A stretch of DNA of 64,000 nucleotides from Podarcis vaucheri (lineage: Eukaryota): NCBI GenBank assembly GCA_965113315.1, contig OZ220370.1. The stretch is one strand, 5' to 3'. Below are positions 624-62,382 of this stretch, piece after piece. The notes under the pieces were generated by a model. The model did not search any database, was not told where the DNA came from, and worked only from the letters and a program-made list of their open reading frames with translations. The position numbers and the translations under genes were made by a program. Position 1 is the stretch's first letter; each line of letters starts with the position of its first letter.

Positions 624-2709
624 AATCTCTAATTTGTTCACATCATTGCTTTCTGCGAGGGGAGAAGCTGCATCAGTGGTCTCAGTGTTAATAAAAGGGA
701 ACCCTTGTATCCAGTTTAACTGTATAGCAGTATTACTTTCCCTTGAATTTATTTTAAAATGCTTTTCATTTAAACTAACAAAAAAGCATGTTATATTATA
801 ATACTTTAATATGGGGTGTTTTTTCCTCCACATAATATTAGAAATATTTCAGATATCTGGCAAAAACGTTACTGTCTTTGAGATAAAGCTATTAAGAGCC
901 ATTTTGCATCATTTGTTTTATTATTTTTAAAGAAGTGTTACACTATAGAGAAAAAAAATTGCACTGGGACAAAGTATTGACATACAGATAGTAAGGACAG
1001 GGTGGTGTTTTTTATTCTTTTTTGGATGAGTTAAATAACTTTTTTTCTATGCTTACTAAATCTATGTTAAAAGCTAAATAAAACCCCAATAATTTCTAGC
1101 CCAATACTATTTTAGCCCCAGCTAATGTTTACATAAAAGAACATGCACACAGGGGTTTTCTCAATGCTGTCAAGAATCTCTTAAGTAGCCACAATCTGGA
1201 GGCTTCCTAGCTATGGCATACTTACTACTTGGCCATTTTCTAGACACCAGCCACTTACTTGTAAAGTAGCCTATCTTAAATTGATAGGTTTAATTTATTT
1301 TATTCAGAGATTGGTTACTGCTTTTTGGATTGTATCATTATTCACTTGAGAAAGTTTATAAAAACTTTTTCCAGTTTAACAAAATTTGGGATAAAAAAGT
1401 CAGAATAATGAGCTGCAAGTATGTTGAAAATACTAACTGACTAAGGAAGTTTTATGGTAAGAAATAAAGAGGTCTTTTATTGGAAGTGCTGTTTTAGGGG
1501 GAAATTGGTCTTGGGCCAATACCAGCTTAATCTGATTTTAGATATGAGCTTTCTGTTAAATTATCTACTGAACACTTGTTTCAAAGCCTAGTCCTGGAAA
1601 CCATGGGAATACCTGTGCATCTTCAAAAGCCATTTTACATTTGAACACTCTAAACATGGGGTTACCACTTCATGAGTCTCAGTGCCTAAACAATCCTTGT
1701 CTAGGAAAGGGTGCAGTTGACATTCCACCCAAAGCTGATGGTAGGCTCTCTGCCATGGAGGCCACAGGGCCTCATTGGACAAAGATTGTTCCATAAATAC
1801 TCCTAAACTCTCTGCATGTTCCTTTAGAGTGCAATCCAATCCAGAGCAGGCAAGTCCCAAATTCTCAGGCAAGGGAATTGGTCATCCAGAGCACCCTTGT
1901 CTTAGCAAAATTCAGCTTCACTTTTTTGGTCCATATCCTACCCACCCTGATTCCAGGCACTGCTTCATCTTGTGCATGCCTTCTTGACTGGGAATTAACA
2001 AAGAGCTGGGTGTCATCAGCACATTGATGACACTGCCCCACGTCTCCTGATGACTGCTTCTGTTGGCTTCATATAGATGTTTAATAACATTGGGGATAAA
2101 ATAGTGTTGTGCAGTACCCCACAACTAAATCACAAGGGTACTGATACATAGTCCCTCAGTACTATTATCTGAGACTGGCCCTGCAAATAGGAGTGGAACC
2201 ACCATAGAGAAGTTCCTTCAACATCCAACTCACAGAAGGTACCATGGTCAGTGGTATCAGAGCTGCAGAGAGATAAGCAAGAGCAACAAAGTTGCACTCC
2301 CCATCTCTCCTCTGGGAAATATTATTCATAAGAACAACCAAGGCTGATTTTGTGTTAAAAAACATCCTGAACCCTTATTGGAGTGGGGGCAGTTAATAGC
2401 TTTCTTCCTAGAGTGTCTACAGCTACATTGCCACAGTCCTGAAGCACCTTGCCCATAAAGGGTATTAGACACTAGGTAGTAGTTGCACTATTGGTATAAT
2501 TAGGAATGAGCAGATTCCCTCAGTACCATGTCATTGTTGCCTCTTGTCTCTGTAGCCTAATGCAATATTAGGTCGCTTTAACAAAAGCTTAGTATGCAAG
2601 TCATTTGTGGTAATAGTTCTACTCTATTCTGTGCTGGTCAGGCTGCCTCTGGAGAACAGAGGTCAGTTCTGAGTGTCTAGCAGAGTGCGATCACGTTAGT
2701 CCCCCCCCC

Positions 2710-5700
2710 TTTTTAATTAATTTTCATTTTTCACATCACTCATATTCACAATACACAAACCATATTGCTTAAAAATATCAACTCAGATTCTTACAGTACA
2801 CTCCAAAAAAATCTTTCCACATATTACCATGCAATCTCAGTGTGTATGTGTGGGTATAAATATAATCTTGATGCATATACTCCAGAAATGGTTGTCACAC
2901 ACAGGAAAGAAAGGGGCTAGAATTCCCTTTGGTTGCATGAATCTGGCACATCAGCTTTTCATCCAGGGCTATTGTCCATGCTTGGAGCACCTATTTCCAC
3001 TGAGAGGAAGAACATTAAGAGTTATTTATGAGCGACTGGTGGAGTAGACATGGTCTTTATTCCAAGTAAAGCAAGTTGAGGGGAAGGTTGTAGGTCCATT
3101 TTGTATATTAAAATCATTTTTTTAAATACCAAAACCCAAAATTGATAAACATGCCCCAAACTTAGGATCTTCCAATTCTATAGCCACTGTTTTCCTCCTG
3201 GATCTTGAATCAAAGACACCAAGACTTGGAATGCCTTATAGTATATAAGCAAGTGGCGCACTCCCAGACCAGATTTTAAATTTATCTTTGCCAAATTTTA
3301 AATTGTTAGGTGTTATAGTTATTGGCAGGAAATAGGCAGGAAAACTTCAGAAGGATCAACATATTCATAGCCACAATGTGGCTCAAGCAAGAAAGGTTTA
3401 GACTTTTCCAGGATTTCAGTTCCTGTCTAACTTGAGATAACAAAGACTCAAAATTTGCTTTCCTTAAAGAGTGCAAGAATTTTGATATAAATATTCCCAG
3501 ATATTTCAGCTTTTGAGGACAGATTGTAAAACCCTCAATGCTTTGTATGAAAGTTTGAGACTGGCAAGACCACAATAAACATAATTTCAGATTTGGTTTC
3601 AGAATTATTCAGTTCTTTAATAACTTCAGGTATTGCCAATTCCGGTTTTGATAATATGAAAGCTATGCCATCTGCAAAAAGGTTAGTATGCATTTTACTT
3701 TATTTTTTTTCACTTTCTATATTCACATTGTTTCTAATGACTGTTGCCAGTGGTTCAATAGACAAGGCAAATAAAAGCAGAGACAAAGGACAATCTTGTT
3801 TTACTCTTTTTAGAGGTTTCTGAGTTGAGACCATTACATAAGACTGTAGCAAAGGAATGTTTGTATACTTCAAAAGTCGAGTTAATAAACCACTCTCATG
3901 TTAAGTCTATACATCAGTGATTTAAAAATGACCAACTCAGCCTGTCAAAGACCTTGTAAAAATCCCATGAGATTATTGCACGTGACTTACCTTTCTTTTT
4001 ACTATAATAAATGACATTCAATAGGTGTCTTACTGGATCCACTATGCCAGCGATACAGAAAGCCTACCTGGTCTGGGGAGATAAAATTTGTAATGAACAC
4101 ATTTAATCTGTTTGCTAAAATGGCTGTATACATCTTAGCTTCTTGGTATAACAGGGCTAATTGGATGCTACAATTCCTCTAGGTCAAGGTTTCTTCTAGC
4201 TTTTGGTAGTACTGTTATTTTAGATTGATGCCAGTAATATGGTGGAAGTTCTGCCAAAAGAACTTCATTAAACAACTTGGCTAGATGGGGAGACAGTTCA
4301 TTTCTAAAATGTTTATAGAACGTTTCTATAAAACTGCCAGCCTCCGGTGCTTTGTATTCTCATAGTTTTTTAATAGCCATTTGCACTTCCTTTAATAGAT
4401 TTACTCAAAGACTGCATATGATCCATTTCTAACTGTTTTAATGAAGTTTATCTAAATAGTCATTGATAGCAAACACAGACGTTGATGGTGAGCTGTGTAA
4501 TTCTGAATAAAATTTATTAAATAATCCACATTTGTCTTTTTCTTTGTACTGAAAAATGCCAAAATCATCTTTTATGTGTAGCACTCTTCTAGAGGCAACC
4601 TTTTGTTTGTTTGTTTGTTAGTTTTTGTTTTTATTAAATATTTTCTTGGTTTAGTACATGCCTTGTCTCTTTTTTCAGGTTATACAGTCTTTCTTGCAAA
4701 TCACTTACATTTGTTGTGATACATTAGTGTTGATACTGTATATAAGGTCGGGGAAGAAAGTGGGAGAGGGTGGGGTGGTGAGGCTTATATTCTTTTATAT
4801 AGTGTACGTGTGAGGTTTTGTGTCAGTGTCAACTGGGTATGTTCTTTTTCTATTTGTTTATTACATTTCCTTGCTAGTGAGAGGTATTGGGGGGCAATAT
4901 TATTTCTTTAGTGAAGGATGTTACGTTACCGTCTTTTTTAGTGACAGTGTATTATTGTTTTGAGTGATTTCCCCCTTGCATCTATTTGCTAAAAGTCTGG
5001 AGTTCTTTCCTCCATATTCGTAAAAGCATTGTTTAGAGAGCATAAGATATTAATCATTGTTTTATTGATTTCTAGAGAGTCAATTTTTGTTCTTTTTTGT
5101 TCTATGAGTTTAAGGAGTTGAGTTTTTTGTTTTGGTTTTTTGCTCCTGCTTGTTTGTAGTGTGATGAGAGGGTTGTAATGTCTTGTTGTAATTTACCATT
5201 TTTTGAGGAGGTTTGCTTTTTAAGAGATGCCCTCTCCTTTATGCAGGCTCCTCTGGTGACCACTTTCATTGTCCTTAAAGGTAGTTTTCAAGAGACTCTC
5301 TCTAGCTAGTTGGTTTGTGGTTAGGATGGGGCTAAAGGACCATGCTGGGGTAGTTTGTGCTTCCTCTCTTGAGGGTAGCTTCTACTGGGGCATGATCTGT
5401 GGTTTTAATGTTACCAATGTATGTTGTTTCTGTGTGAGCAGAATGCTGTCCAGTCAGGACATGGTGCCGGGACATCCAGACTGGAATGTGGCTGGTGTCT
5501 CCCAGGTTCTTTTCTCCCAAGATGTCACAAAGGCCTCAGTTTTTAGCATTTTCAGTAGTTGGTCAGTGTCTCTAATTGTTTGGGGCTTCCCTCTGAGGAA
5601 GGTTGCCCAGGGGGTTGTAGGATGGATGTCTTTTAGGGATGCCTCCCCTGTTGAGGTTGAGGTTACCTCCTAGGATTGTTTACCCTTTGGAGAAGGAATT

Positions 5701-6000
5701 TGTTTAGTGTTTCCTGGATGAACTGTAGTTGTTTTGTGTTTCGGGCATATATGGAGCCAATTGTCAGTTTAGTTTTGCCATTAGCAAAAATGAATCTACC
5801 TTTTTGTGTTTTAGCACTGTTGTGGCTTTAAAATGTAGGCCTCTCCGGGGGCCTTTCCTGAGCGAGGTGCCACCCATTCTTGACTGGACCTGGGTTAGCT
5901 CCGGCTTTTGCTTCCTTTGTGTAGGTTGTGGAAGGCAATGTGTGGTTTCACTCACCAGAACAGACACTTGTGGAACAGAAGTAGAGGTCAAAAACTTTTC
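2710..6000 (-). mobile_element. Decayed L1-clade LINE ORF2 (endonuclease and RT remnants), probably interrupted near 4600-4980
   Basis: Minus-strand fragments: IYARN (IYAPN-like, ~5745), TDHAPV (SDH-type endonuclease motif, ~5390), KAP..FYK (~4340), QDCPLSLLLF (~3790), FAD (~3675) and KYLGI..WKSLNLS (3306-3575). There are many stops and frameshifts, and the boundaries are approximate. Confidence 0.7.
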
Positions 6001-6138
6001 TCTACAAAGGTCATACTTTTTCTCCCTGGCTTTTTGGCTGTATATTTTTTCTGGAAATGATCACTACTTAAAACATCTTTGGTTACTTTATAAAGGCAAT
6101 GCTGCCAAGGGATTGAGAGGTTTGGTAATTTGACACGT

Positions 6139-6242
6139 GGTACTCCACCAAGTTTTACTCAGAGTAGGTCCATTGAAATTAATGGCCCTAACTTAGTCAT
6201 TAATTTCAATGGGTCTATTCTGAGTCAAACTTGTTGAGTACC
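6139..6242. mobile_element. Short palindromic MITE-like repeat
   Basis: Imperfect inverted arms of about 45 bp (ggtactccaccaagttttactcagagtaggtccattgaaattaatg / cattaatttcaatgggtctattctgagtcaaacttgttgagtacc) around a short spacer. Confidence 0.6.
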
Positions 6243-7537
6243 ATCCTTGTTTTCTTCTGAAAATCACATGTAAAAGTTTGATTCTCAGCAGTTGAATGGT
6301 ACAGTATTGACTTTTCCTTTTCTAACTTCCCTAAAAATAATATGATTCAATCACTAGGGGGCACCAAGCACTTTTGAAAGACATTGCTCTAAGATGCAAT
6401 TTTTTAAAAAAATCATTCTGAAAGTGTTTTTGTCCTCTACATTCATTCCACAAGTGCTTGTTCTGGTTTTGTGGTGTTTTTTAATTTGCACATTTTTCAG
6501 TCAAATGTGTGTCTTGTACAGCTTGTGAATATATCTGCATGACAGTACTGCAAATGAAATGTGTTTTCCAAGAGTGTTCACAGTATATAGAAAAGAAGGA
6601 ACGTTTGAAGCCCCATACACAATGCCATTGATCCATCTAGCTCAATATTGTGTACAGTGACTGGGAGCAACTGCAGGATTTTCAAACAGGGAACACTCCC
6701 AGTCCTAGTGGTAGACGTTGAGGCAACAAACATTGCTAGTTTTTTCTATGCAGGATAAGACTGCAGTAAACTGAATTTTAACGCATCTCTGATAAACGGA
6801 ATTTCCCTTTTAGTGTTTTTAGGTTTTCTTAATAACCTTTGGCATGATCATAGAGGCTGCACAAATGTTCCGCAGGAAACAGCCACCATAACCAGAAACA
6901 AAATAATTGTATGTGACAGAACCGGGAAGATTCAAGGCATGCCCATAGGCAAGCTCTCCAACCCAATGTTCTAGAAATACAACCAACAATCACTCTATGT
7001 TGGCACATTGCAACTTACAGGCAACTTAGCAAGACTCCTGTCTTGTTCATCTTGGTAAGGCACGCTGCTATATCTGTGTCAACACAACAATATCAATAGT
7101 GTAAAGCTATGTATTGTGTTTAGACTTAAATTTCTTTCTCTCTTGCACATATGCGGGCACACCACTATGGATACATAACTAGATTGCCCCCTGGCTATTC
7201 CCCCTCCCCCAGCCTTTCCAGTTTTTCAGCATTGACTTGGAACTTTTTATGGGAATGAAATGGCCAGTAACCTGAGTCGTTTGGGGAATCCTCCCATCTA
7301 AACTGTTGTAACAAAGGTCTACCAGATGATGAGGGCAAGAATCAGCCTGTTATAGTGAGTATGAACCTTTTCCCTCACCAGTCTAATGCTAAGCACTGTG
7401 ATACTCCTAGAAACTGCTCCAGAGGTGAATTTAGGGCAGCATGGCTGGTTCTGCCACAGTGGGTGCCAAGCCTTTGGGATGCTGCAAGGGATCGCAACTA
7501 TGATGTCGGGAATTGAGCAGAATGGAAGGTGAGAGGC

Positions 7538-9620: not shown

Positions 9621-9683
9621 ATGGATTTGTGGCTATTTTATGTGCTTCTGAGCGGGGTTATTTTGCAGATAGTTTGCTGTCTG
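9621..9683 (+). CDS. MEP1B: Meprin A beta exon 1 (signal peptide)
   Basis: MDLWLFYVLLSGVILQIVCCL, 63 nt, donor GTAAG, phase 0. MDLW start as recalled for mammalian MEP1B. Confidence 0.9.
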
Positions 9684-10317
9684 GTAAGACAATAAAAAGC
9701 ATACTTTAATTCTTAAGGATTAAGTGAATTAGCACATTTGTATTTAATGTGCATATTTTTTTAAAATGCCAATAGTTTCTGTAAATCGGGGCCAGGGGTC
9801 ATAATTATTGGGGTTGCAGTGGGGAGAGAGAGTTTAATCATTTCCTCCTTGGCTGTGGTTCTGACAAAAATCACTCTTTTGGAGTTAACGTCTGCCCAAG
9901 ATTGCATGCTTCTCCCTCCCTTCACTTCTGGTGCAGCCACAAGGATGAGATCAGAAGCTTTTGCTTCCAACTTACACAACAGTTTAGCATTGTGGCTTAA
10001 CCTAAACTGTGGTTAATTTTATCTATGCCAGAAAAGAAGGGGGACGTGCATGAGCCTAGGGGCAGGTTATGTTGGTTCCCATCACAGTAAATATGCAGCC
10101 TCTGTCTCTGTGTGTTCTGTCCCCTATTTTAGAGTAGTTGTTTTATATATCAAAAGCTAAAACAATTTTAAAAGTTTTCAAAGTGTAATTATGCAAATAC
10201 AAAAAAAGAACAACAAGCTTGCATTGTTATAAGTTGTTAATGAATAAATATCTGAAATAACATTTGTACCATAGTGTTATTTCTACTTGGATCCTCTCAC
10301 TTATTATAATGGTATGT

Positions 10318-11379
10318 TGTAGTGAAGTTGCCATTGTTAGAAAAATCATTCCTTGGTCAAGAAGACGAGTGTGGCCTTGTGGGTATTTTGTCAGCCGCAA
10401 GGACCCTGGGAAAGTGAGTTGTGTATCTTTAAAACCCAGACTTTCTGGCTCCTTGCCATGAGAGGTTTATGGGAGGAAAGGGGTCCTTGATTAATGGAAG
10501 GTTTGGCACCTGGGTTGTGGGTGTGAATCTCTTCCTCCTTCCCGGAGGTTGTTTGTTTTCAAACTGCTGAGAATTGGGGATCTGGTTAATTTCCACAGGT
10601 GGGAGGAAGATTCTTTGATTAAGGGTTCAAGCCTAAATTGACCCAGCTGCAAAAGAATGAGCTGATCAAATTAAGACTCTTGATTGGCCAAAAGTTACGA
10701 CGCAAAGTCAGAATTGTGGATAAAAGATCCAGGGATGTCTTGTTAGTTGCTCTCTGCCATTGCAAAATGCTAGATGCCATTGCTCTGCAATCCGCAAAGA
10801 TGCCCGGCTGTAAGCTCCATCGTTAACAGCCGTTTCGTCCTTTTGAAATGGAAATCCTCTACCAGCTTCATTATACAACATCTTGAAAGGACTCTTGACT
10901 ATTCTAACTGTGGTCTCTTTGTGAGTATGTACGAGCTAGTCATACTGTACAATGTTATTGTTTTCATGTTTGTAAGACTCTTAAGAAGTGCCTGTGGTTT
11001 TACCACAAGTTTTCAGTTTTCTTTTTAAAATAAAAACTTTTAATTTAGAACCGGTTAGTGTGTTGGTGCCTTTTCCGGGGAACAGCTAAATCCAAGCCTT
11101 CTGCTTAGTCACGCTATACCGAGTGAACTTCTGCCTGCAAGCTTGTGGATGCAGCTTGTAAGGAGTGGGGATTGCCAGGGTAATTGGACACACTCTCCTC
11201 CCTGGGTGGTGTCTCTGGAATTCCCTGAACTAAAGGGAGTGGTGGCAGCCTTACCGGTGTGATTTCAGTCTGTGTTTGAAAAGTAGCTTCCCTCGCCAAC
11301 CTATTCCAGGAACCTGAATTGGCCGGAGAGCAGAGTCAGGGAGGGGGGAATAGGGTGGACGAGTGGAACCGTTACTACA
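10318..11379 (+). repeat. 5' LTR (1062 bp)
   Basis: TGTAGT...ACTACA inverted termini. Reverse CCAAT (ATTGG, ~10683), TATA-like GATAAAAG (10719-10726), AATAAA (11029-11034) followed by a GT-rich tract. Confidence 0.96.
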
Positions 11380-11397
11380 TGGTGGCAGCGGTGGGAT
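11380..11397 (+). other. Primer binding site complementary to the tRNA-Leu 3' end
   Basis: TGGTGGCAGCGGTGGGAT directly after the 5' LTR. Its reverse complement ATCCCACCGCTGCCACCA matches the recalled 3' end (with CCA) of vertebrate tRNA-Leu(AAG/TAG). Confidence 0.9.
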
Positions 11398-11501
11398 CTA
11401 GAACTTCCCTGCGGAAAAGCACTGTAACGTTTTAAAAATAGTTTGGCACGTATCTTTTGTGGCTTACAAACGGTTTATTATTTTGGATAGAGATAGTTAG
11501 G

Positions 11502-14500
11502 ATGGAGGACTCTTTAGCAACTGGACAACAATCCATGAAAACTATTGATGAATGGGGGGTAGTAGGAGGAGCCAGTACCCTGCCGGTGGAAACCAACCCC
11601 ATCAGGACTCCAAGTCCTAGTGAAAAGTCCGCGTCGTGGTATTCCGATGGGTCCCAGGAGGAGCTGGTGGATTCCAGCATCCCAGAGACGATTCGGAGGG
11701 GTCAGCAAAAGACCTGTCGTGTGGAAGGAGGGAGGGCTGCGCTGGAGTGCCAAACCCAAACTCCTCGTGAGGAGGTGCAAGGAGAGACAGCTTCTGCACG
11801 TCCTAGGGAAAATTTTCCTGTTTACACAGAGTCCAGGGAGATGGATTTCTCAGAGGGACTTGATGTGGAATGGATTCGTGATCCAGTGGACGGTGGATTC
11901 CGTTCCAGAGAGAAGTGTCCAAAAGTCGGTGGGGCTATTCGTCTAGCACCAAGATACGACCGGATGGCGTATGATTCTCAAAGTTTGCAGCAACAGCAGC
12001 AAGAGGTGACGGAGAGAGGCTACAGCCGAGGGGCATATGCGCCGGATGTACGCAGGAAGGTGGGACAGCCTTCGTTTAGCCCGGGAAAGACCTACTCGCC
12101 CGTCAATGCTCAACCGCTTCATGTGCCGGTGCGTCGGTATGTGGTCGAGGAGGAGGAGTTCTACCAGAGACCTCAGCGTGAATATGCAACAGCAGCGGAA
12201 CCGCGACGCCCGGATGGGTGGTTGCCGCCTAGCAGAGTTCTAAGGTATGAACCGGTCCCTGTGCAGGGGGGAAACCAGCAACAACCGTCCCCTCCAGGAC
12301 TGACTTTAAATAACTTAAATTGGAGGGTGTTTCAGAAATACCAACCTCCCACTGATGTACTGTGTTACCTAAATCTTTTTGAGAAAACTTGCAAGGACAT
12401 GGGGGTTGCACCAGAACTGTACATGATGGTTTTGCGTTCCCTGGTTTGTGGGGATTTGTCCGAACTAATGGGAACTCTTCCCCAAGATGACCAAAATGAC
12501 TATGAGAAATTTAAAAGACTAGTTATGCGACGGCTTGGATTACACCCTGAGCAATACAGAAAAGCTTTTCGGAAGGTGGAGAAAGGTGGGCTCACTGATA
12601 ACATAGCCGTTTTCTCTGCAAAGATGGCTCAGAATTTTGAACTGTGGCTTGCAGCCGAGGGGGCTCAGGACGCGAAGGATATCAAGCAGCTCCTGCTAAT
12701 TGAGCAGTTGATGAGGTCCCTGTCCCCTGATATTGCTAGCTTGGTTGCAGACCAAAAGCCGCGAACTTTGGAGGAAGCTACCTCCTTTGCTGAGTCCTTT
12801 AGGATTAATCGTCCCCATTGGGCTGCTAAAGGGGGGAACAGTGCTAATAGACCTATGATTGGGTCTGGAAGATCTGCCCCCCCCATCAAAGAACCTAGCC
12901 CAGGTATTCCAACCCCTGCTAAAAACTCTGCTGCAACAGGGGGAGAGCGTCCGAGGTTGTCCCCGGCATCTGGACTGTGTTTCTTGTGCAAAAAGCCGGG
13001 ACACGTGAAAGCCGCTTGTCCCCAGTTGGGGGATAAAAAGCCCCCCATCCTCACATCCACTCCCGCCGTGCGAATGATCCAGCGGCCGGAGGAAGATTGG
13101 GAGGAGGAGCAATTAAAATCCGGAGTGGAGCAGAGTTTGGCTTTGAAGGAGGGTGGGGCAACGCCTAAAGCGGAAACACCTGCTGTCCCAATAACTGCTG
13201 TTAATGTGGGTCCGGTGAGTGCGGGGAGTAAATTCAAAACCCCCCATGTGAACTGGGCAAAGTTGGAGTTTTCTGCCCCTATTGAAGTCAATAAAACTGT
13301 TGTGGAATCGTATCGGGACTCTGGCTCAGACATTACAAGTGTATCTAGAGATCTGGTCCTGCCTAGTCAAATGCAGACAAAGCCTCTGAAAATTAGTCCA
13401 TATGGGGTGGAGGAGATTTATCAGCCAACAGCAATAGTCCCCCTTAAATACAAAGGCTATAGTGGGGACCATTTGGTGATTGTTCACGACCCACAAGTTT
13501 GCAAAAGCCCAGTCTTGGTTGGAAACGACCTTGGGTTTCAAGTTTACCTACAACAACAAACCAAGGTGAATCCGGTAACTGTAGCACCTGCCCCCACCTT
13601 AATTCAGGCAGGGACAGACTTTGTTGAGCCTGAGACAGGGTTGGATGGAAAACCCGGAGAGGAGGGAGAGTTACCAATCCTGGATATGGAACACACAAAG
13701 AACTTTGATGCCCCTGGTGAACTGGGGGATTTGGGTGAGTTTGCTGCGGAACAACAAGCAGACCCCTCCTTGCAGGTTTGCAGGGAGGCGGTTGGGGCCC
13801 CCCTGCGGGGAGAGAAACGGGCCCAATTTGTGTATAAAAAAGGCCTTTTGTATCGGCAGTTCATTCCAAAAAAGGTGAAGGACAAAGACTTTGTTTTACA
13901 ACTAGTGGTTCCAGCAAAGAAGCGGTCAACTGTTCTCAGTTTGGCACATGAGGATGGCTTAGCTGGCCATATGGGACTACAAAAAACTGTAGAAAAACTG
14001 ACTCGATATTTCTACTGGCCTGATGTATATCAAACAACTAAAGCATACGTACGCTCTTGTGTAGTATGTCAAAAGGTGGGGCATGATTGTGATAATCTCC
14101 CCAGTGAGTTACAGAGTGTCCCCTTGGAAGCAAATGTTCTGGAGAAGTGGGGTATTGATTTAGTGGGACCTTTACCAAAAACCCGCTCAGGAAAGCAATA
14201 TTTGTGTATAATCATTGATTATGCCTCTCGTTATGTCTGGGGGACGAGTTTAGCTAACACTTCTGCTAACAACCTGGTGAAAGCTTTACTCTCTGCCTTT
14301 TGCTCTTTAGGAATTCCTAAAGTTTTGGTGAGCGACTTGGGAACTAATTTCATGGCTAAGGTAACTCAGGAGGTTTTGCGAATGTCTGAGGTGCGCCACC
14401 ATACCTCTATTGCTTATCAGCATCAAGGAAATGGGTTGGTGGAGAGAGTGCAAAAGACCTTAGTCCAGATGTTACGTAAATATGCTTTGGCTCACGGTTC

Positions 14501-16490
14501 CAGTTGGGATCAGGATTTGCCTTTGGTGGTGGCTGCTTATAACGACTCCCATCAAAGAAGTTTGGGCTTTGCACCAAATCAGTTAATTTTTGGAAGGTTT
14601 CTGAATACCCCTCTCTCAATGCTGCGCAAGGAGTGGGAAGGGTCTGAGGAGGAGATAAAGTTACCTTCCGTCAGTGAATATTTTGCCCAACTTAAAGGAA
14701 CCTTAGCAGATGTATGGAAATTGGCCAAAGAGAATTTAGAGAATGCCCGATTAGATCAAAAGAAGGTACATGATACCAGAGCGGTGTGCAAACAGTTCGA
14801 GGTGGGAGACCAGGTGTGGATTTTGCGTCCGTCCCGTCCTCACAAATTGGATGTGAAATGGCAAGGTCCGGGTGTTGTAGAAGCAAAACTGAGCTCTGTG
14901 CGTTATCTGGTGAGCTGCAAGGAATTGCACCCCACTGCTCGGGAGTATCATGCAAATTCTTTAAAGAGGTATGCAGAACAAAAGATCTCTGTGCTGGCCA
15001 TTTCACAGAGTCAGGAGGAGGTGCCCTCCTCGCCTGTTGATCTTTTAACTGAGTATAAACAGGCTGGAGCAGTTTCTGATGTGTTGCAGTTGCCGACTTT
15101 AAGTGAAACTCAGACTAAAGAGCTTTATGAGGCACTGCTACCTTACAGTAACACCTTCAGTACAAAGCCGGGTAGGACTCACCTGGCTCAGCATCATTTT
15201 GTTACGGGGGACTCCCCCCCTATTGCCTCACGTCCTTACCGAGTTGGTGAAGCTATTGCACAGAACATTGAAGCCGAAGTGAAAGAAATGTTGGAACTGG
15301 GGGTCATAGAGCCTAGTAAGAGTGCTTGGGCCTCCCCTATAGTGCTGGTTCCAAAACCTGATGGCTCCATTCGCTTCTGTGTTGATTACAGAAAGATAAA
15401 CATGATTACTGTCCCTGATGTGTTCCCTCTGCCTAGGATTGACACGCTGATAGAGAAGCTGGGATGTGCGAAATTTATTACTGTTATGGATTTGACCAAA
15501 GGGTATTGGCAAATCCCTTTGTCCCCTGAAGCTTCTGAAAAGTCTGCCTTTACCACTCATGTAGGCTTGTACCAGTTTAAAGTGCTACCATTTGGATTGC
15601 GAAATGCTCCTGCAGCTTTCCAAAGGTTGATTAACTCCTTGATTCATGACATGAGTGAGTTCTGTTGTGCTTATTTGGATGATCTAGCTGTTTTTTCCGA
15701 ATCATGGCCAGAACACCTTAAACACCTGCAGAGAGTTTTGGCCCGGTTGCAAGAAGCAAACTTGACTGTAAAAGTGTCTAAATGCCAGTTTGCTCAAGGA
15801 GAAGTGGTGTATTTGGGATTTAGAGTTGGGTCTGGAAGCATTAAAACTCTGGAGGCTAAGATACAATGTATTCAAGAGTGGCCTCGCCCTGTGGTGAAAA
15901 AAGACGTGCAGTCCTTCATAGGGTTGGTAAATTATTACAGGCGGTTCATCAACCACTTTTCAACCCTGGCAGCTCCTCTCACCAACCTTTGCAAGAAATC
16001 CTTGCCAGTTAAGATAGAGTGGAATGAAGAGTGCCAAAGAGCTTTTGATTTGTTGAAACATGCACTGGTGAGCAATCAAGTCATGTTGGCCCCAGATCAG
16101 AGTCGGCCGTTTAAAGTACAGACGGACGCCAGTCAAACTGGATTGGGTGCCGTTTTGTTACAAGAAGATCAAGAGAAAAATTGGCGTCCCGTGGTTTATC
16201 TGAGTAAGAAATTGATAACCAGGGAACAAAATTATTCTACCATTGAAAAGGAGTGTTATGCTTTAGTCTGGGCTCTAACTAAACTGCGTCCCTATCTGTG
16301 GGGTACTTTCTTTGAGGTCCAGACTGATCACTCTCCACTGTGTTGGTTGGAAAGAGTAAAAAGTTCTAACCAGAAATTGGCCAGATGGAGTATGGCCTTG
16401 CAAGATTTCCAGTTTAAGGTCACTCACATTGCTGGAAAAGAAAATGTGGTTGCTGACACCCTTTCTAGGATGTACCAATCTGTTCCATGA
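11502..16490 (+). CDS. Gag-Pol polyprotein, 1662 aa from the first ATG: capsid with SCAN-like CTD, CCHC knuckle, protease, integrase, RT, RNase H
   Basis: ATG in good Kozak context (aggATGg). CFLCKKPGHVKAAC (12978-13019), protease RDSG (~13317), integrase HHCC plus D..D..E (GIDLVG, SDLG, VERV; ~13947-14970), RT YLDD (15672-15683), RNase H TDAS/EKE/TDH/ADTLSR. No stops or frameshifts. Confidence 0.96.
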   Translation: MEDSLATGQQSMKTIDEWGVVGGASTLPVETNPIRTPSPSEKSASWYSDGSQEELVDSSIPETIRRGQQKTCRVEGGRAALECQTQTPREEVQGETASARPRENFPVYTESREMDFSEGLDVEWIRDPVDGGFRSREKCPKVGGAIRLAPRYDRMAYDSQSLQQQQQEVTERGYSRGAYAPDVRRKVGQPSFSPGKTYSPVNAQPLHVPVRRYVVEEEEFYQRPQREYATAAEPRRPDGWLPPSRVLRYEPVPVQGGNQQQPSPPGLTLNNLNWRVFQKYQPPTDVLCYLNLFEKTCKDMGVAPELYMMVLRSLVCGDLSELMGTLPQDDQNDYEKFKRLVMRRLGLHPEQYRKAFRKVEKGGLTDNIAVFSAKMAQNFELWLAAEGAQDAKDIKQLLLIEQLMRSLSPDIASLVADQKPRTLEEATSFAESFRINRPHWAAKGGNSANRPMIGSGRSAPPIKEPSPGIPTPAKNSAATGGERPRLSPASGLCFLCKKPGHVKAACPQLGDKKPPILTSTPAVRMIQRPEEDWEEEQLKSGVEQSLALKEGGATPKAETPAVPITAVNVGPVSAGSKFKTPHVNWAKLEFSAPIEVNKTVVESYRDSGSDITSVSRDLVLPSQMQTKPLKISPYGVEEIYQPTAIVPLKYKGYSGDHLVIVHDPQVCKSPVLVGNDLGFQVYLQQQTKVNPVTVAPAPTLIQAGTDFVEPETGLDGKPGEEGELPILDMEHTKNFDAPGELGDLGEFAAEQQADPSLQVCREAVGAPLRGEKRAQFVYKKGLLYRQFIPKKVKDKDFVLQLVVPAKKRSTVLSLAHEDGLAGHMGLQKTVEKLTRYFYWPDVYQTTKAYVRSCVVCQKVGHDCDNLPSELQSVPLEANVLEKWGIDLVGPLPKTRSGKQYLCIIIDYASRYVWGTSLANTSANNLVKALLSAFCSLGIPKVLVSDLGTNFMAKVTQEVLRMSEVRHHTSIAYQHQGNGLVERVQKTLVQMLRKYALAHGSSWDQDLPLVVAAYNDSHQRSLGFAPNQLIFGRFLNTPLSMLRKEWEGSEEEIKLPSVSEYFAQLKGTLADVWKLAKENLENARLDQKKVHDTRAVCKQFEVGDQVWILRPSRPHKLDVKWQGPGVVEAKLSSVRYLVSCKELHPTAREYHANSLKRYAEQKISVLAISQSQEEVPSSPVDLLTEYKQAGAVSDVLQLPTLSETQTKELYEALLPYSNTFSTKPGRTHLAQHHFVTGDSPPIASRPYRVGEAIAQNIEAEVKEMLELGVIEPSKSAWASPIVLVPKPDGSIRFCVDYRKINMITVPDVFPLPRIDTLIEKLGCAKFITVMDLTKGYWQIPLSPEASEKSAFTTHVGLYQFKVLPFGLRNAPAAFQRLINSLIHDMSEFCCAYLDDLAVFSESWPEHLKHLQRVLARLQEANLTVKVSKCQFAQGEVVYLGFRVGSGSIKTLEAKIQCIQEWPRPVVKKDVQSFIGLVNYYRRFINHFSTLAAPLTNLCKKSLPVKIEWNEECQRAFDLLKHALVSNQVMLAPDQSRPFKVQTDASQTGLGAVLLQEDQEKNWRPVVYLSKKLITREQNYSTIEKECYALVWALTKLRPYLWGTFFEVQTDHSPLCWLERVKSSNQKLARWSMALQDFQFKVTHIAGKENVVADTLSRMYQSVP

Positions 16491-16685
16491 AACATGAATG
16501 TGTATTCTGTCAACATCTTCTGCTGAGAAATTATCCTGAAACTGTGTAAATAGTGGATTGGGGGGGGTGCTATTAGTGTGTGTGATTTAAAAAAAGCTGT
16601 TGAAAAAACCCCTGGTCCAAGAAAATCTACCTCATTGTAAAAATAGTTTTGAGAGAATAGAGGGACTTAACCCTATATTCTCTCT

Positions 16686-16696
16686 AGGGGGGAGCG
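16686..16696 (+). other. Polypurine tract
   Basis: AGGGGGGAGCG immediately before the 3' LTR. Confidence 0.85.
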
Positions 16697-17758
16697 TGTA
16701 GTGAAGTTGCCATTGTTAGAAAAATCATTCCTTGGTCAAGAAGACGAGTGTGGCCTTGTGGGTATTTTGTCAGCCGCAAGGACCCTGGGAAAGTGAGTTG
16801 TGTATCTTTAAAACCCAGACTTTCTGGCTCCTTGCCATGAGAGGTTTATGGGAGGAAAGGGGTCCTTGATTAATGGAAGGTTTGGCACCTGGGTTGTGGG
16901 TGTGAATCTCTTCCTCCTTCCCGGAGGTTGTTTGTTTTCAAACTGCTGAGAATTGGGGATCTGGTTAATTTCCACAGGTGGGAGGAAGATTCTTTGATTA
17001 AGGGTTCAAGCCTAAATTGACCCAGCTGCAAAAGAATGAGCTGATCAAATTAAGACTCTTGATTGGCCAAAAGTTACGACGCAAAGTCAGAATTGTGGAT
17101 AAAAGATCCAGGGATGTCTTGTTAGTTGCTCTCTGCCATTGCAAAATGCTAGATGCCATTGCTCTGCAATCCGCAAAGATGCCCGGCTGTAAGCTCCATC
17201 GTTAACAGCCGTTTCGTCCTTTTGAAATGGAAATCCTCTACCAGCTTCATTATACAACATCTTGAAAGGACTCTTGACTATTCTAACTGTGGTCTCTTTG
17301 TGAGTATGTACGAGCTAGTCATACTGTACAATGTTATTGTTTTCATGTTTGTAAGACTCTTAAGAAGTGCCTGTGGTTTTACCACAAGTTTTCAGTTTTC
17401 TTTTTAAAATAAAAACTTTTAATTTAGAACCGGTTAGTGTGTTGGTGCCTTTTCCGGGGAACAGCTAAATCCAAGCCTTCTGCTTAGTCACGCTATACCG
17501 AGTGAACTTCTGCCTGCAAGCTTGTGGATGCAGCTTGTAAGGAGTGGGGATTGCCAGGGTAATTGGACACACTCTCCTCCCTGGGTGGTGTCTCTGGAAT
17601 TCCCTGAACTAAAGGGAGTGGTGGCAGCCTTACCGGTGTGATTTCAGTCTGTGTTTGAAAAGTAGCTTCCCTCGCCAACCTATTCCAGGAACCTGAATTG
17701 GCCGGAGAGCAGAGTCAGGGAGGGGGGAATAGGGTGGACGAGTGGAACCGTTACTACA
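16697..17758 (+). repeat. 3' LTR (1062 bp)
   Basis: Same sequence as 10318-11379 by eye. The ORF-track peptides within both LTRs are identical at a constant offset of 6379. Confidence 0.96.
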
Positions 17759-18526
17759 TATGTGTTCTAATATAACAAACTAGCTAAACTGTATGGTACA
17801 AGAGGCTAGTATAAACCACAGTGTTGTATCTATAGAACAACACAATAGACAAACGGCACACCAGCTATTTTAATATCCTTATTATGAAGTGTGGGTAATG
17901 AATATATTTTAATGATCCAGTATTTTCATATATGCTAGGTTATGTGTAATATCCCAGTATCCTACTGACCAATAATTAATTTTGTTTAAAAACCTAATCC
18001 AAGCTCCAGTGATTTTCTTGAGCTGAGGCCTGGGAAATGATGCTGTGTCCTTTTTTGCACCTCCATAGGCACACCATTCTCTTGTTTGGTACAACACTAG
18101 TTCCTCTTCCTTTCCAGTTGTGAAAGTGTAGGATTATGGAAAAAGAAATTCTCTTTAACTGTTCTGTGATAGAATGAGTATTAGGGAATTTAATCCCAGC
18201 TCCGTGCAATTGCTAAGCACACCAGCAGGAATATTATCACCACAGTATATAAATATATTAACAAGAGAAAGCAACAGTTAACCAAGATTTTTAAAATATA
18301 GCAAGAAACGGGGTTTAGTCCCATGTCTCAGGTAGAACATGTTTTCATATATGCACAGAAAATCATAGGTGTATAATATTGCATTGAATCTGACTTTAAA
18401 CTTTTGATGCAAAACTTGCCAGATGAATTTGGCTGATAGAATGGCTGCACTTGCCATTAGGTATCACCTGTAATCTGCAAAGAACAGATTGCACATCTGA
18501 CTGTTTCCTCCTTTCTTTTATTCTAG

Positions 18527-18545
18527 CCTGTTCAAGAACTACAGG
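18527..18545 (+). CDS. MEP1B: MEP1B exon 2 (19-nt micro-exon)
   Basis: Strong acceptor ctttcttttattctag, PVQELQ-G, donor GTGAGT. It bridges phase 0 to phase 1 as the flanking exons require. Confidence 0.8.
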
Positions 18546-19173
18546 GTGAGTTCTATTTTGTATCTTACTAATTGTGACAAAATAGGGGCAACAAAAGCAG
18601 CTGCTCATGAACACAGCAGACTCAAAAGCTGATTTAGAATTATGGTTAGCAGATTGACATTCTAATCCTAAACGTATTTACTTGGAAATTAAGTACCATT
18701 GAGTTGAGTGGAACTTGCCTCTGAATAGTTATGCTTCTAGAACAATACAGAGGTGGGGAGAACCAAAGGTGTGCACTGACCAGATGGAAGGTGGGGTCTG
18801 TTTTTCTTCCTCTGCCCTCCCTGCACCCCAGTTCCAGGAGCTTTCCTTCTGAACAACTTTTGCCCTTCCATTTATCACCGTGGAGGGGCTACATCAGTTC
18901 CAGGACTGGTGTGGTTTGTCCCTGGTTCCAGTGTTGTGTTGGGGGAACAGACAGAATTAGGATCTGGCAAATCCAAAACCTCTCCTAGCATGACTTCCGC
19001 ATGCTTCCTTTTTGACCTTTTGACATTGGGGCTCTATTGGAAAAAAACACTGGCTATGCATCTTTCTGCAGCCTCATACTAGAGGCTTACAAGGTCTGAT
19101 CTCCCTCTGTGGAAGGACCTCTCTCTCCACCTGTGGAGAGGGACAGTCACATAAAAGTATGGCCTCTAGGATG

Positions 19174-26364: not shown

Positions 26365-27239
26365 CCGTATTTTTCGCCCTATAGGACGCACTTTTTCCCC
26401 TCCAAAAATGAAGGGGAAATGTGTGTGTGTCCTATGGGGTGAATGCAGGCTTTCGCTGAAGCCTGGAGAGCGAGAGGCGTCGGTGCGCACCAGGCTTCAG
26501 GAGAGCCCCGTCGCCAGCCTTTCGCACTGTCCCCCGACTTGGCTAGAAGGCTGGCGGGGGGAGAAGCCTGCTCCTCCCCGTCGCCAGCCCCGCAAACTCG
26601 GGGGACAGCGGGAGAGGCGCAGCGCGCCTTTTGCACTGTCCCCCGACTTGGCTAGAAGGCTGGCGGGGGGGGGAGAAGCCTGCTCCTCCCCGTCGCCAGC
26701 CCCGCAAACCCGGGGGACAGCGGGAGAGGCGCAGCGCGCCTTTCCCGCTGTCCCCCGACTTGGCTAGAAGGCTGGCGGGGGGGAGAAGCCTGTTCCTCCC
26801 CGTCGCGAGCCCCGCAAACTCGGGGGACAGCGGGAGAGGCACAGCGCGCCTTTCCCGCTGTCCCCCGACTTGGCTAGAAGGCTGGCGGGGGGGGAGAAGC
26901 CTGCTCCTCCCCGTCGCCAGCCCCGCAAACTCGGGGGACAGCGGGAGAAGGCTGGCGGAGGGCTTTCCCCTCCTCCAGCCCCGCAAGCTCCCAGAGTGAT
27001 GCCAAAGCTGCACGCAGCTTCCACATGGCTCTGGGTCCCGTTCTGGGGGCTGGGGGAGGGGGAAGCTCCGCTTTCCTCTCCTCCAGCCCCGCAAGCTCCC
27101 AGAGCGATGCCAAAGCTGCCAACGCTCGAGCTTCCCCAGCCCCTTGCCTGGGGGGGGGATGAATTTTTCCCCCTTTATTTCCCCCCCAAATCTAGGTGCG
27201 TCCTATGGGCCGGTGCGTCCTATTAGGCGAAAAATACGG
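26365..27239. mobile_element. Non-autonomous Tc1/mariner-superfamily (Tc2/pogo-like) element with an internal tandem array
   Basis: 27-bp TIRs CCGTATTTTTCGCC(CT/TA)ATAGGACGCAC, TA TSDs at 26363-64 and 27240-41. Confidence 0.85.
26517..26950. repeat. GC-rich minisatellite, ~110-bp unit, about 4 copies
   Basis: gtcccccgacttggctagaagg recurs at 26529, 26638, 26750 and 26860. Unit length varies with a G-run. Confidence 0.9.
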
Positions 27240-29334: not shown

Positions 29335-29640
<306 letters not shown>

Positions 29641-30338: not shown

Positions 30339-30557
30339 GTAAGGAAGGAAACTTCAACAAATATGATGATAAAAGATCTGACTTCCTTAATGTCCCATAT
30401 GACTATAACTCTGTAATGCACTACAGTAAAAATGCCTTCAGGAATGGAACAGAACCAACAATAGTAACAAATATACCAGCCTTCATTGATGTGATTGGAC
30501 AGCGCATGGATTTCAGTGAATATGATATCCGGAAGCTGAGTCGACTCTACAACTGCA
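30339..30557 (+). CDS. MEP1B: MEP1B exon 8 (Met-turn)
   Basis: GKEGNFNKY...YDYNSVMHYSKNAF...IGQRMDFS...LYNC, 219 nt. Confidence 0.96.
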
Positions 30558-34900: not shown

Positions 34901-35715
34901 GTATGAAAGCATTATTTTTAGTATGTATATGCTCTTGTTCTAGTTAACACTGGGGCAGTAAATCTGTGCCTGCTCTGTATCACTTTAGACTGCAGGTGGG
35001 GGCTCAAATTATTGCATACTCCTCCGTTAAAAAATAACAAAAAGTTCCTCTGTATAGAAGGCTAGCGTGACAGAGAGAAGATTAAGCCACATTCCTCATT
35101 CCATAACATCAAGTTTTTGATGTGGAGGTGTTTTTTTTTTAATGGAAGTCAATTAAAAAATGTAGAGTTTGAAGCTGTAAAGACCAGACACCAGTTTACT
35201 ATGCTAGAGTTTAATATTTCACATTTGACAAGAAAAGTTCTGAGACCACAAGTATTTTATTCTTTGGTCTGGGTTCTCCGTAGTGTTTTTAATGGATTTC
35301 TCTTGCCCCTGCCCCACAAAAAGGAGGCCCGTATTGATCCATGGAAGTCTTGATCTGAAATTATAATGTGACACTGTAGTGATGGACTTTTAAATTGTAT
35401 TTCGAGCCTAAACTGTTAAATATATTACATTTAAAAACCAGTAGATTGAGATCTGGCCAGTAGACAGTAGGGAGTCTATCCATCTGTGAAGTGATGTTTC
35501 CTGTGATCCATCACAATCAGGAGAGTCTGCGTCAGGGGAAGCACTGAAAAGTCTTTAAGGATAGGTCCTGCATAAAACTCAAGTACACAAATATGAATGA
35601 CTAAATGAACTGTTCAACACTTAACCCCTTTTAAATTTCATGGGGAATGTGAAAATCTGTTTGTTTAACATTGAAATATGTTGTCAATATAATGCACCTC
35701 ATTATTCTTTTCCAG

Positions 35716-36153
35716 GTTCACCTGCAGGCTACTGGGAGTTACACCATGTGTCTTTAAATGTTGCAAGTAAATTCCGAGTAGTATTTGAAGGCATAAAAGG
35801 ATCCGATGCATCTAATGGAGGCCTTTCCATTGATGATATCAACCTGTCAGAAACTCAGTGCCCTCACCATGTTTGGCATATAAGAAATTTCACTCAGGTG
35901 CTTTCAAGCGCTACAATACAATATAGTCCACCCTTTTACTCTCCCAAAGGGTATGCATTTCAGATTGGTTTGCTCCCCACCAGTTCATTTAATTTACACA
36001 TACATTTGCACTTGATCTCTGGTGCAAATGATGGCCAGTTGCAGTGGCCTTGTGCATGGCAACAAGCTACAGTGCTTCTGCTTGATCAACATCCAGACAT
36101 CCGCCAACGTATGTCAAATCAAAGGAGTATAACTACAGACCCAAGCCAACTAG
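35716..36153 (+). CDS. MEP1B: MEP1B exon 11 (MAM end, MATH/TRAF start)
   Basis: KFRVVFEG...GGLSIDDINLSETQCPHHVWHIRNF...QWPCAWQQAT...SNQRSITTDP, 438 nt. Confidence 0.95.
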
Positions 36154-36371
36154 GTAGGTTAATACTTGGATCAGTTTACCCTAATGGTTATGGTTATATA
36201 TATATATGCTTCAATAATGCCTTAAAATTTCTCTTTCTTTCACCAACAGTAGTGTATTAAAATTCCTAAGGTGCATGAGAAACTGCCCCCAGACCAGATA
36301 ACACAAAACAAAATAATCTATATTAAAAAAAAGTTGAGCTGATTACCTCCTTGTGTAGACACTGTGAAATA

Positions 36372-59640: not shown

Positions 59641-60698
59641 CTAGTTTTTGGACTAGTTTTCTGTTCTTACTTTCACCTCAGTTTTGTAGCATTTTGCATA
59701 CTTTTGAAAATCTGTCTGATGAGAGTGAATGTTAGGACAAAAAACAACAACACATGCACGTACGCTGCCAAAAAAGAGTCTCCATTGACCCTTAACTCCT
59801 TAAAACCATTGTCTATCTCTACGCCATATTTTATTTAATTCCACCATTTTATTGATTTCTACTGCTGATTTTTCCATTCAGGGCCTATTATTTTTTGACC
59901 CATACAGCAGACATATGCTCATCTCTAATGCAATTTTAATCATACTGTTCCTTGAAGCAAAGTATTACATGGAATACTTACGGTTTGCAACATAGAGACC
60001 CCTTTAAAAAAACACACAAAAAACCCCCTGCCTGTTCAATTTGCTAAGTCAATTTCCATCACTCAAGTGTTTCTCCATTTTTCTTCTTCCCCAGCAGCAT
60101 TAAGCAGGTTCCAAGCTGGTAACCTTTTGTTCTTGGGAGGACATACTCATTCAGCGTGGAGTTTCATCTTACCATTAAAAATGGCAAAAATTATTTGCAT
60201 AGCAAAAAAACATTTCTCCAAAAAAACATTTACATGTGAAGTTGCACAATGCACAGAAAAATGCATGCTCTACAGGGAAACATTTTTATTGGACGCAGTA
60301 AAATCCTGTTCTCAAATGTGGTTTACTTCCAAACCAATCTAGAAAAGTGCAAACTCTAGAGGGGGAAAAATGAACACCAAGGCTGCTATCCTATACCCAT
60401 CTTATTGTGAGTAAGACCCACTGAGCTCAGCGAGGTATACTTTTAAGTAGATATATACAGGATTGTACTTAAGCCTTCAAGAACTATGAAATGGGTATGG
60501 ACTAATTGAGGAAATAATTCTTTCTGCAGAAGATCTGGGGGATCCCAAAGCATCTGAATTCACAATTATGACAGTAGAACTTGCAATCCTGGGTCAGGAA
60601 ATCAAGTTCACCCCATTATCCAGATCAACACTTTTAAGTTTATGATCTGGACCTACCATCACCCATCTTTATTAGAAAAAAGAAAGACCATGACTTAC

Positions 60699-61877
60699 TG
60701 CTTCTGATTTAGGAGGCACAGGTGGTGGAGGTAGGGAAACTTCTGGAGATTTTGATGTTACTGTTATAGGCCCAGGTGCTGGAAGAGAAGAATTGCCACA
60801 CTTGGACCGGAAAGAACTCCTATAGCTGTCACATTTGTTCTTCTCACTTTGTGAGCGAGTGAAAGGCTGATCATTCATTTTCCCACCCCCCTGGTCCAGC
60901 CACAGTTCCTCATAAGGAAGTTCTGGTTTGGTAGGTAAACACAACGATTCTTCACAAACTTCAGGGAACAGGTAGTCGCTGCTGCCATCGCCAGAGTCCT
61001 GGCACTGCAGGGAATCATGGGAGAATAAAGCCCACTCATTGCACAAGTCCCTGCAGCCATGAAGGTTCACCTCACTATTTCCATGGAGGTTGTTTCCATA
61101 AACACAAACCGAGAGGCGGTGGAAGGATTGCGTCAACTCGTCCCGAGCGTAGCTAAGAGAGTTTGGCATGTGGTTGTGGCTGTGGGGCCGGGCTTTCTGC
61201 GGACTTTTGCACTCTTCATTCCAGTCGGCTTTCACATCTCTCACGCCACGGGAATACTCGTCTATGTCAAACTGCTCTTGGCAGAGACTGAACCAGTGCT
61301 TGACAAAGGCTTCGTGACCCACCTCCCCTTTCACAAGGCTTTCGGGGAGCGTGAACTTTGGAAGAGCCAAATGCAAAGGGAAGTGCATGGGAATGATTTT
61401 GTTGCTGTGCAGCGCACAACAAACCACCACAGTCTTGGTCTGAATGTTGACGAACTTGTAGCGGTGCCCCTCGCGGACAAAATGCAGGTCGTAAGGGTTT
61501 CGCGGCGGAGAGCTGGGCACAGTCACATTCACGGGCAGCCGCGTCTTCTCCACGATGTTGCGAATGGTATGTTCGCCCTCCTGCATCTGCAGCTCCAGGG
61601 GGCTGCGCGTGCTGAAGCGGCCCTTGCATTGGAAAGGAAGGCTGATGCTCTCATTGGTCCTGTGGTTCATGCAGATCAGGCACGGCATCTTGCCTCTGCC
61701 CAGCTTGCTGATGGAATTGAGCTTCCCGATTTTCTTGAAGATGGTGTTGAGCCGTGACTTCTCCTTGGAAGATTTTGCATAGAGGATTTCCGCTTGCCCC
61801 ATTAACGTCAGCTCGTCTCCCGTGCAGAGGGTGATGTTGTAAAGCTCGGTGTCTTCGTTGCATTCGCCCGAAGCCAC
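60699..61877 (-). CDS. GAREM1: GAREM1 large internal exon (CABIT domain and downstream region)
   Basis: VASGECNEDTELYNITLCTGDELTLMGQAEILYAK...LPPPPVPPKSEA, 1179 nt, phase 0/0, canonical splice sites. Upstream exons lie outside the window. Confidence 0.95.
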
Positions 61878-62382
61878 CTGTAGCACAGAAAATTTAAGAG
61901 ATGCCCAAATAAGTCATTTCGAACATGAAGCATAAAAGCAACAGCTGCAGAAACAACAAATTAAAAATTATTGAAACTGCAGATAACGGATCAACATTTA
62001 TTTAAAATGTCTTATTTAAATTTCCTCTACAACCAACCTGATTTCTTTACTGAATATGAAATTCTATGAATCCATATGTACACAGGCAATTCTGACATAT
62101 CCTGGAAAAAATTATGCCCCAGCCAAAGAATAAAAACAATGCAATTAATGTAGGGAAACCAAACATTTGAACTGAGTAAGACCACCCCCCGCAAAGCCTT
62201 GCAAATTAGGACTGAGTCACACTGACTTTGCTGAATTTTTCATCCCACTCCCATAACTAGGGAATGGCAGTGTGGTAGCTGCCAGCTGCATTCTCTCTTT
62301 TCTGGCTTAAGGCAGCCTCTATAGTTCTGCCGTGGATCTGTGCTTCAAGGACATAATGGAGTACTACAATGGTTGAATACTC

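Follow-up and report, generated by a model that had tools for sequence, protein, structure and literature searches.

Background

Gmr1 of Atlantic cod is the type element of a clade of long terminal repeat (LTR) retrotransposons that has been described from fish, frogs and sea urchins, from turtles and lizards (Anolis), and from some crustaceans. Members of this Gmr1-like clade are of the gypsy type, with the integrase (IN) located upstream of the reverse transcriptase (RT) (PMC3587641). Their gag has a C-terminal capsid domain from which the SCAN domain present in zinc-finger proteins of hosts has descended (PMC4592553), and a SCAN domain followed by protease (PR), IN and then RT and RNase H (RT-RH) presents the signature of the clade (bioRxiv 10.1101/2025.03.03.638093). 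In the same 2025 survey, Gmr1-like elements were found depleted in the genomes of reptiles other than turtles. Here we describe an element of a lacertid lizard, Podarcis vaucheri, located in a stretch of 64,000 nucleotides (GenBank assembly GCA_965113315.1, contig OZ220370.1), called the window below. It is very probably an autonomous Gmr1-like Ty3/gypsy LTR retrotransposon, inserted recently into an intron of a MEP1B-like meprin gene. An original prediction, made by a model from the letters of the window, had announced an intact element of this type, the insertion of which was taken to be extremely recent and possibly polymorphic.

Results

Ends and replication signals

The full-length LTR retrotransposon spans positions 10318-17758 of the window, on the plus strand. 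Its 5' LTR (10318-11379; TGTAGT...ACTACA) and 3' LTR (16697-17758) are both 1062 bp long and carry the same sequence, with 0 mismatches in direct comparison; the exact repeat run reaches 1063, the base after each LTR being T in both by coincidence. The LTR termini are of the TG..CA type and form a 6-bp inverted terminal repeat (TGTAGT/ACTACA). The element is bounded by a perfect 5-bp target site duplication (TSD), TATGT, at 10313-10317 and 17759-17763, a match with a probability of about 1/1024 by chance. Adjacent to the 5' LTR lies a primer-binding site (PBS) of 18 nt, TGGTGGCAGCGGTGGGAT (11380-11397), complementary to a tRNA 3' end: its reverse complement, ATCCCACCGCTGCCACCA, agrees at 18 of 18 positions with the 3' end of tRNA-Leu(AAG/TAG) and has been printed as a 3' fragment of this tRNA (PMC8698603). 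This check was made against published tRNA-fragment sequences, and ARAGORN detected no tRNA gene for PBS comparison in the window. A polypurine tract (PPT) of nine purines, AGGGGGGAG (16686-16694), is located 2 nt upstream of the 3' LTR.

Direct TG..CA repeats flanked by a TSD and a tRNA-complementary PBS accompanied by a PPT, by which LTR retrotransposons are recognized, are thus all present, as the original prediction had held. Each LTR carries a single AATAAA, at 11029 in the 5' LTR and at 17408 in the 3' LTR. Neither the LTR nor the interior has a second copy within the 64-kb window, and the LTR gave no match in a phage collection, as expected for a vertebrate element.

The gag-pol frame

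The interior is occupied by a single gag-pol open reading frame (ORF) of 1677 codons on the plus strand (11457-16490), with the first ATG at 11502 and the stop codon at 16488-16490. A SCAN-like domain, corresponding to the C-terminal capsid domain of gag, comprises residues 364-449 (12546-12803; Pfam SCAN, E 4e-9, score 36.6 bits at a cut-off of 27). It is followed by the CCHC zinc knuckle of the nucleocapsid, CFLCKKPGHVKAAC (residues 508-521, 12978-13019; motif), and by the protease active-site motif DSG (residues 621-623, 13317-13325), which was read from the translation; none of the Pfam protease models gave a match at E 0.01 or better. Next comes the integrase (13908-14447), located upstream of RT and recognized by the Pfam models Integrase_H2C2 and rve as well as by its motifs. 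Its H2C2 zinc domain covers residues 818-874 (13908-14078) and its catalytic core, with D901, D960 and E996, residues 896-988 (14142-14420); a motif search found both HHCC and D..D..35..E retained. A GPY/F-like motif, WQGPG, was read by eye at residues 1135-1139.

The reverse transcriptase (RVT_1; residues 1298-1457, 15348-15827; Pfam E 1.5e-35) contains the motif YLDD at residues 1406-1409 (15672-15683), and the RNase H (residues 1522-1651, 16020-16409; Pfam RT_RNaseH, E 4.5e-40) retains its acidic residues according to the motif search. Pfam and motifs together give the order SCAN-like capsid, CCHC, PR, IN, RT and RH along one frame. The predicted open ORF with every catalytic motif in place has thus been recovered in full. 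No chromodomain match was found in the gag-pol frame. An env gene is excluded, because the 206 nt between the pol stop codon and the 3' LTR leave no room for it.

On the opposite strand, an ORF of 222 amino acids (12665-13333, minus) overlaps the gag-protease part and is without Pfam match; it is probably a product of chance in a G+C-rich stretch.

Relationship to Gmr1-like elements

The presence of RVT_1, RT_RNaseH, Integrase_H2C2 and rve, together with grouping of the RT with gypsy-type elements, assigns the element to Ty3/gypsy (Metaviridae). Within this group, the order PR-IN-RT-RH and the SCAN-homologous capsid domain of gag are those of Gmr1-like elements. IN precedes RT in 76 among the best 120 database hits. 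Six full-length relatives (from Eublepharis, Chrysemys, Anolis, Cyprinus, Lytechinus and one assembly contig) contain SCAN, IN, RT and RH, in this order, in one protein, and three more full-length hits, P0013 and P0025 included, are IN-first too; the order that had been predicted is thus common to all full-length relatives checked.

In a maximum likelihood tree of the RT-RNase H region, one branch splits 36 IN-first from 22 RT-first sequences with SH-aLRT support of 100. A single IN-first row, P0073, stood outside its group in this first tree; it is a long branch, comes from a fused arachnid gene model and was paired with another long branch. After removal of four long-branch rows (P0073_1044, P0086_1570, P0038_626 and P0018_1367) the group became clean and the split kept an SH-aLRT of 99. 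The element falls inside the IN-first group, which includes sequences of lizards, turtles, fish and sea urchin, and its neighbours in the tree are, in order, a Podarcis muralis protein, a gecko pair and turtles. Putative membership in the Gmr1-like clade, as proposed originally, is therefore supported by domain order, by the SCAN-like gag and by clustering with IN-first elements.

The best protein matches are gene models of Podarcis muralis with 89-96% identity, one of which (P0001) is 95% identical over 1113 residues with no stop. The next-best matches, from gecko, Zootoca and turtles, are below 50% identity. As the P. muralis relatives bear generic names ('Gypsy retrotransposon integrase-like protein 1', 'ribonuclease H', 'CCHC-type domain-containing protein'), the family, which the original prediction had thought possibly uncatalogued, is already public under such names.

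The first of these names, used in public gene sets, together with the match of gag to the host SCAN domain, could suggest an endogenous retrovirus or a domesticated host gene, be it a SCAN gene or a gypsy-integrase gene. We consider this hardly credible: the space behind pol is too short for env, the RT is of the Ty3/gypsy type, LTRs, PBS, PPT and TSD are all intact, and the family is multi-copy, as described below.

Age of the insertion and the probable empty site

As the LTRs show 0 differences over 1062 positions, the age of the insertion has a 95% upper bound of about 0.6-1.8 Myr, calculated as 3/(2 x 1062 x mu) with mu of 2.4 to 0.8e-9 per site per year, which are assumed neutral rates. 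The identity of the LTRs alone only bounds the age in this way and does not prove an extremely recent event. The abundance of CpGs, noticed already in the original prediction, is expressed in an observed/expected ratio of 0.44 in the element as compared with 0.16 and 0.28 in the left and right flanks, respectively; retained CpGs fit a short exposure to methylation decay.

Further evidence is provided by four public runs, which were compared with positions 12859-18858 of the window. Run X1 (organism A) contains the largest share of the words of this region, 0.82. Contig 8 of X1 (3967 letters) matches 17759-18858 with 0 differences and has 2356 more letters to the left of 17759 that are unlike the adjoining LTR. 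Contig 24 of X4 (3714 letters), a run sharing the organism label of X1 and coming from a different sample and study, matches 17759-18770 with 18 differences and likewise has about 2700 more letters to the left of 17759, again unlike the LTR. Both matches end at 17759, the first base of the right TSD copy, precisely the point at which a site without the element would diverge from the window. This reading of contig orientation is backed by contig 32 of X5, which the other convention would force to end exactly at the arbitrary end of the reference. We strongly infer that the contigs of X1 and X4 represent the empty site. The insertion is thus probably not fixed, two public samples seemingly carrying the uninterrupted site.

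Identical LTRs, retained CpGs and empty-site-like contigs all fit a recent insertion. Of the original claims about its age, recency is hence in agreement with three kinds of evidence, and the "extremely" is more than the LTRs can prove by themselves. The suggested polymorphism gains from the contigs of both samples to the extent that their run-on is correctly identified.

Flank pieces of X3 (organism B) at 17759-18858 are identical to the window, and the X4 flank differs from it at 18 of 1012 positions despite the organism label shared with X1. Two readings suggest themselves: deep lineages may be united under one species label, or organism B may be closer to the window than the X4 sample is.

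Size and variation of the family

In X1, the summed depth of contigs is about 400-1500 for the interior and about 1000-6700 for the LTR, as compared with 132 for the single-copy flank, and 115 aligned contigs are at least 99% alike. From this depth and from the near-identical contigs it follows that the family is multi-copy. Among the contigs listed, the longest interior ones of X1 show 9 differences from the present copy over 2459 positions (about 0.4%); the corresponding differences are about 1.0% in X3, 2.6% in X4 and 4.0% in X5. In the species of X1 the family therefore includes a very young subfamily, with older relatives in neighbouring taxa, and, given several near-identical copies in the same species, it has been active very recently.

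At several positions only the alternative letter is seen in X1; the missing letters of this copy prove nothing, because contigs drop rare variants. The dominant LTR variant of X1 departs from the LTR of this copy at, for example, 17288, 17292, 17320 and 17324. One contig of X4 and one of X3 skip 72-73 bp at 17539-17612, near the 3' end of the LTR, so that LTRs of a different length may exist among other family members.

The multi-copy nature of the family bears on a different explanation, according to which the insertion is older and fixed and its LTRs owe their identity to polishing or collapse during assembly, or to gene conversion between them. With a depth far over that of the flank, reads from other copies could indeed polish both LTRs alike. 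Nevertheless, contigs from two samples diverge from the window right at the TSD without entering the LTR, the entire 5-kb frame is open and the CpG ratio is about twice the flank level. Moreover, the dominant LTR of X1 differs at several sites, so that the LTRs of this copy were not simply polished to the family majority. For these reasons we regard an older insertion as very unlikely. The contigs of X1 might also be explained by an assembly artefact, in which a retrotransposon copy from elsewhere was mis-joined into the locus: X1, whose flank is identical and which is possibly the source sample, has one contig without the insertion and none listed with it. A mis-join would not, however, yield exact LTR ends together with a perfect 5-bp target duplication, and the contigs are equally accounted for by an insertion that is heterozygous or individual-specific, which makes an artefact extremely improbable. 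A genuine and recent insertion remains by far the better explanation.

The host gene and the rest of the window

Plus-strand exons on both sides of the element belong to a meprin metalloprotease gene. A short signal-peptide exon (MDLW...) at 9621-9685, which reads MDLWLFYVLLSGVILQIVCCL and ends at GT, precedes the element. Downstream of it, meprin exons are located at about 19952 (...LFEGDIKLDE), about 22125 (...RNSIIGNEYRWPHTIPYVLEDSL) and about 24015, the astacin zinc site at 29476, the Met-turn SVMHY at 30410 and an exon with MAM and MATH domains at 35640-36260, all on the plus strand. The gene is presumably closest to human MEP1B. This MEP1B-like meprin gene thus harbours the element in an early intron, in sense orientation. 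Any influence of its LTR AATAAA signals on the meprin gene is speculation.

Within the meprin gene region, a G+C-rich tandem repeat (26517-26948; 110-bp unit, 3.9 copies, 94% matches) overlaps a minus-strand ORF of 183 amino acids without Pfam match. An ORF of 404 amino acids with a CABIT domain (60672-61886, minus strand; Pfam E 2.4e-35) probably represents the last exon, a large one, of a GAREM-like gene. In human, GAREM1 and MEP1B are neighbours, which would imply conserved synteny. The segment 4001-6000 shows strong strand asymmetry (GC skew +0.18, AT skew -0.26). Two plus-strand ORFs of 134 amino acids each are located 460 bp apart at 5269-5673 and 5729-6133; a Pfam search and a search for direct repeats were both negative.

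Discussion

Several points have to be weighed against the interpretation of the element as a young and autonomous Gmr1-like retrotransposon. Assembly polishing or gene conversion could in principle have made its LTRs identical. The rows of the tree are hits to the query, chosen by likeness, and cod Gmr1 and the GyDB references are not among them. The letters running on to the left of 17759 are presumed to be the left flank. None of the contigs listed for any run bridges the filled junction, so the support for the insertion comes, so far, from the assembly. The element was found in no RNA run among the public runs searched. Its PPT, though correctly placed, is a short purine run of 9 nt, and its LTR is without a TATA box (no match to TATA[AT]A). 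Even with these points taken into account, we maintain the interpretation with high confidence.

The structure read in the sequence, combined with established biology of LTR retrotransposons, allows a life cycle to be proposed. Transcription would start from the 5' LTR and one gag-pol polyprotein would be translated, to be cut by its own protease. The parts released would be the SCAN-like capsid, the CCHC nucleocapsid, protease, integrase, RT and RNase H. Minus-strand synthesis would be primed by tRNA-Leu at the PBS and plus-strand synthesis at the polypurine tract. The integrase would then insert the DNA copy by means of a 5-bp staggered cut, which would leave the 5-bp duplication.

A bolder proposal, which we put forward tentatively and consider somewhat less probable than its opposite, is that the insertion still segregates, perhaps as an allele of a single individual, and belongs to a Gmr1-like family transposing in wall lizards at present, and that the polyadenylation signal of its LTR could shorten meprin transcripts.

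The element adds a well-preserved and very young member of the clade where the clade has been reported scarce, that is, in reptiles other than turtles. The record of Gmr1-like elements is extended modestly by a young multi-copy family in a lacertid: what is known of their build and function is unchanged, and the type of element is itself ordinary. Its probable insertion polymorphism lies within a protease gene, and the element may be of use as a population marker. In squamates, the SCAN zinc-finger genes, descendants of this capsid, have multiplied greatly. If a live Gmr1-like family exists in a lacertid, it would offer a natural system in which restraint of the ancestral element by SCAN zinc-finger proteins can be tested. 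The element is also a natural case for the relation of these squamate proteins to the retrotransposon source of their co-opted capsid.

Compared with described members of the Gmr1-like clade, the element is alike in having IN upstream of RT-RNase H, a gypsy-type RT, a SCAN-like capsid domain and a single frame for gag-pol (shared by the relatives checked), and in lacking both env and a chromodomain. It differs in that its family is lacertid-specific, sharing 33-49% amino acid identity with relatives from gecko, turtle, Anolis and fish. The UniRef proteins P0001, P0002, P0007 and P0008 of P. muralis belong to the same family, and P0001 spans PR-IN-RT-RH; they are nonetheless other copies or fragments produced by gene models, and none of them spans the whole gag-pol. 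The third comparison concerns the SCAN zinc-finger proteins of amniote hosts. The capsid domain of the element, residues 364-449, has its homologue in the SCAN domain of these proteins (PMC4592553), but the proteins are encoded by host genes without LTRs or pol, whereas the domain of the element is part of gag.

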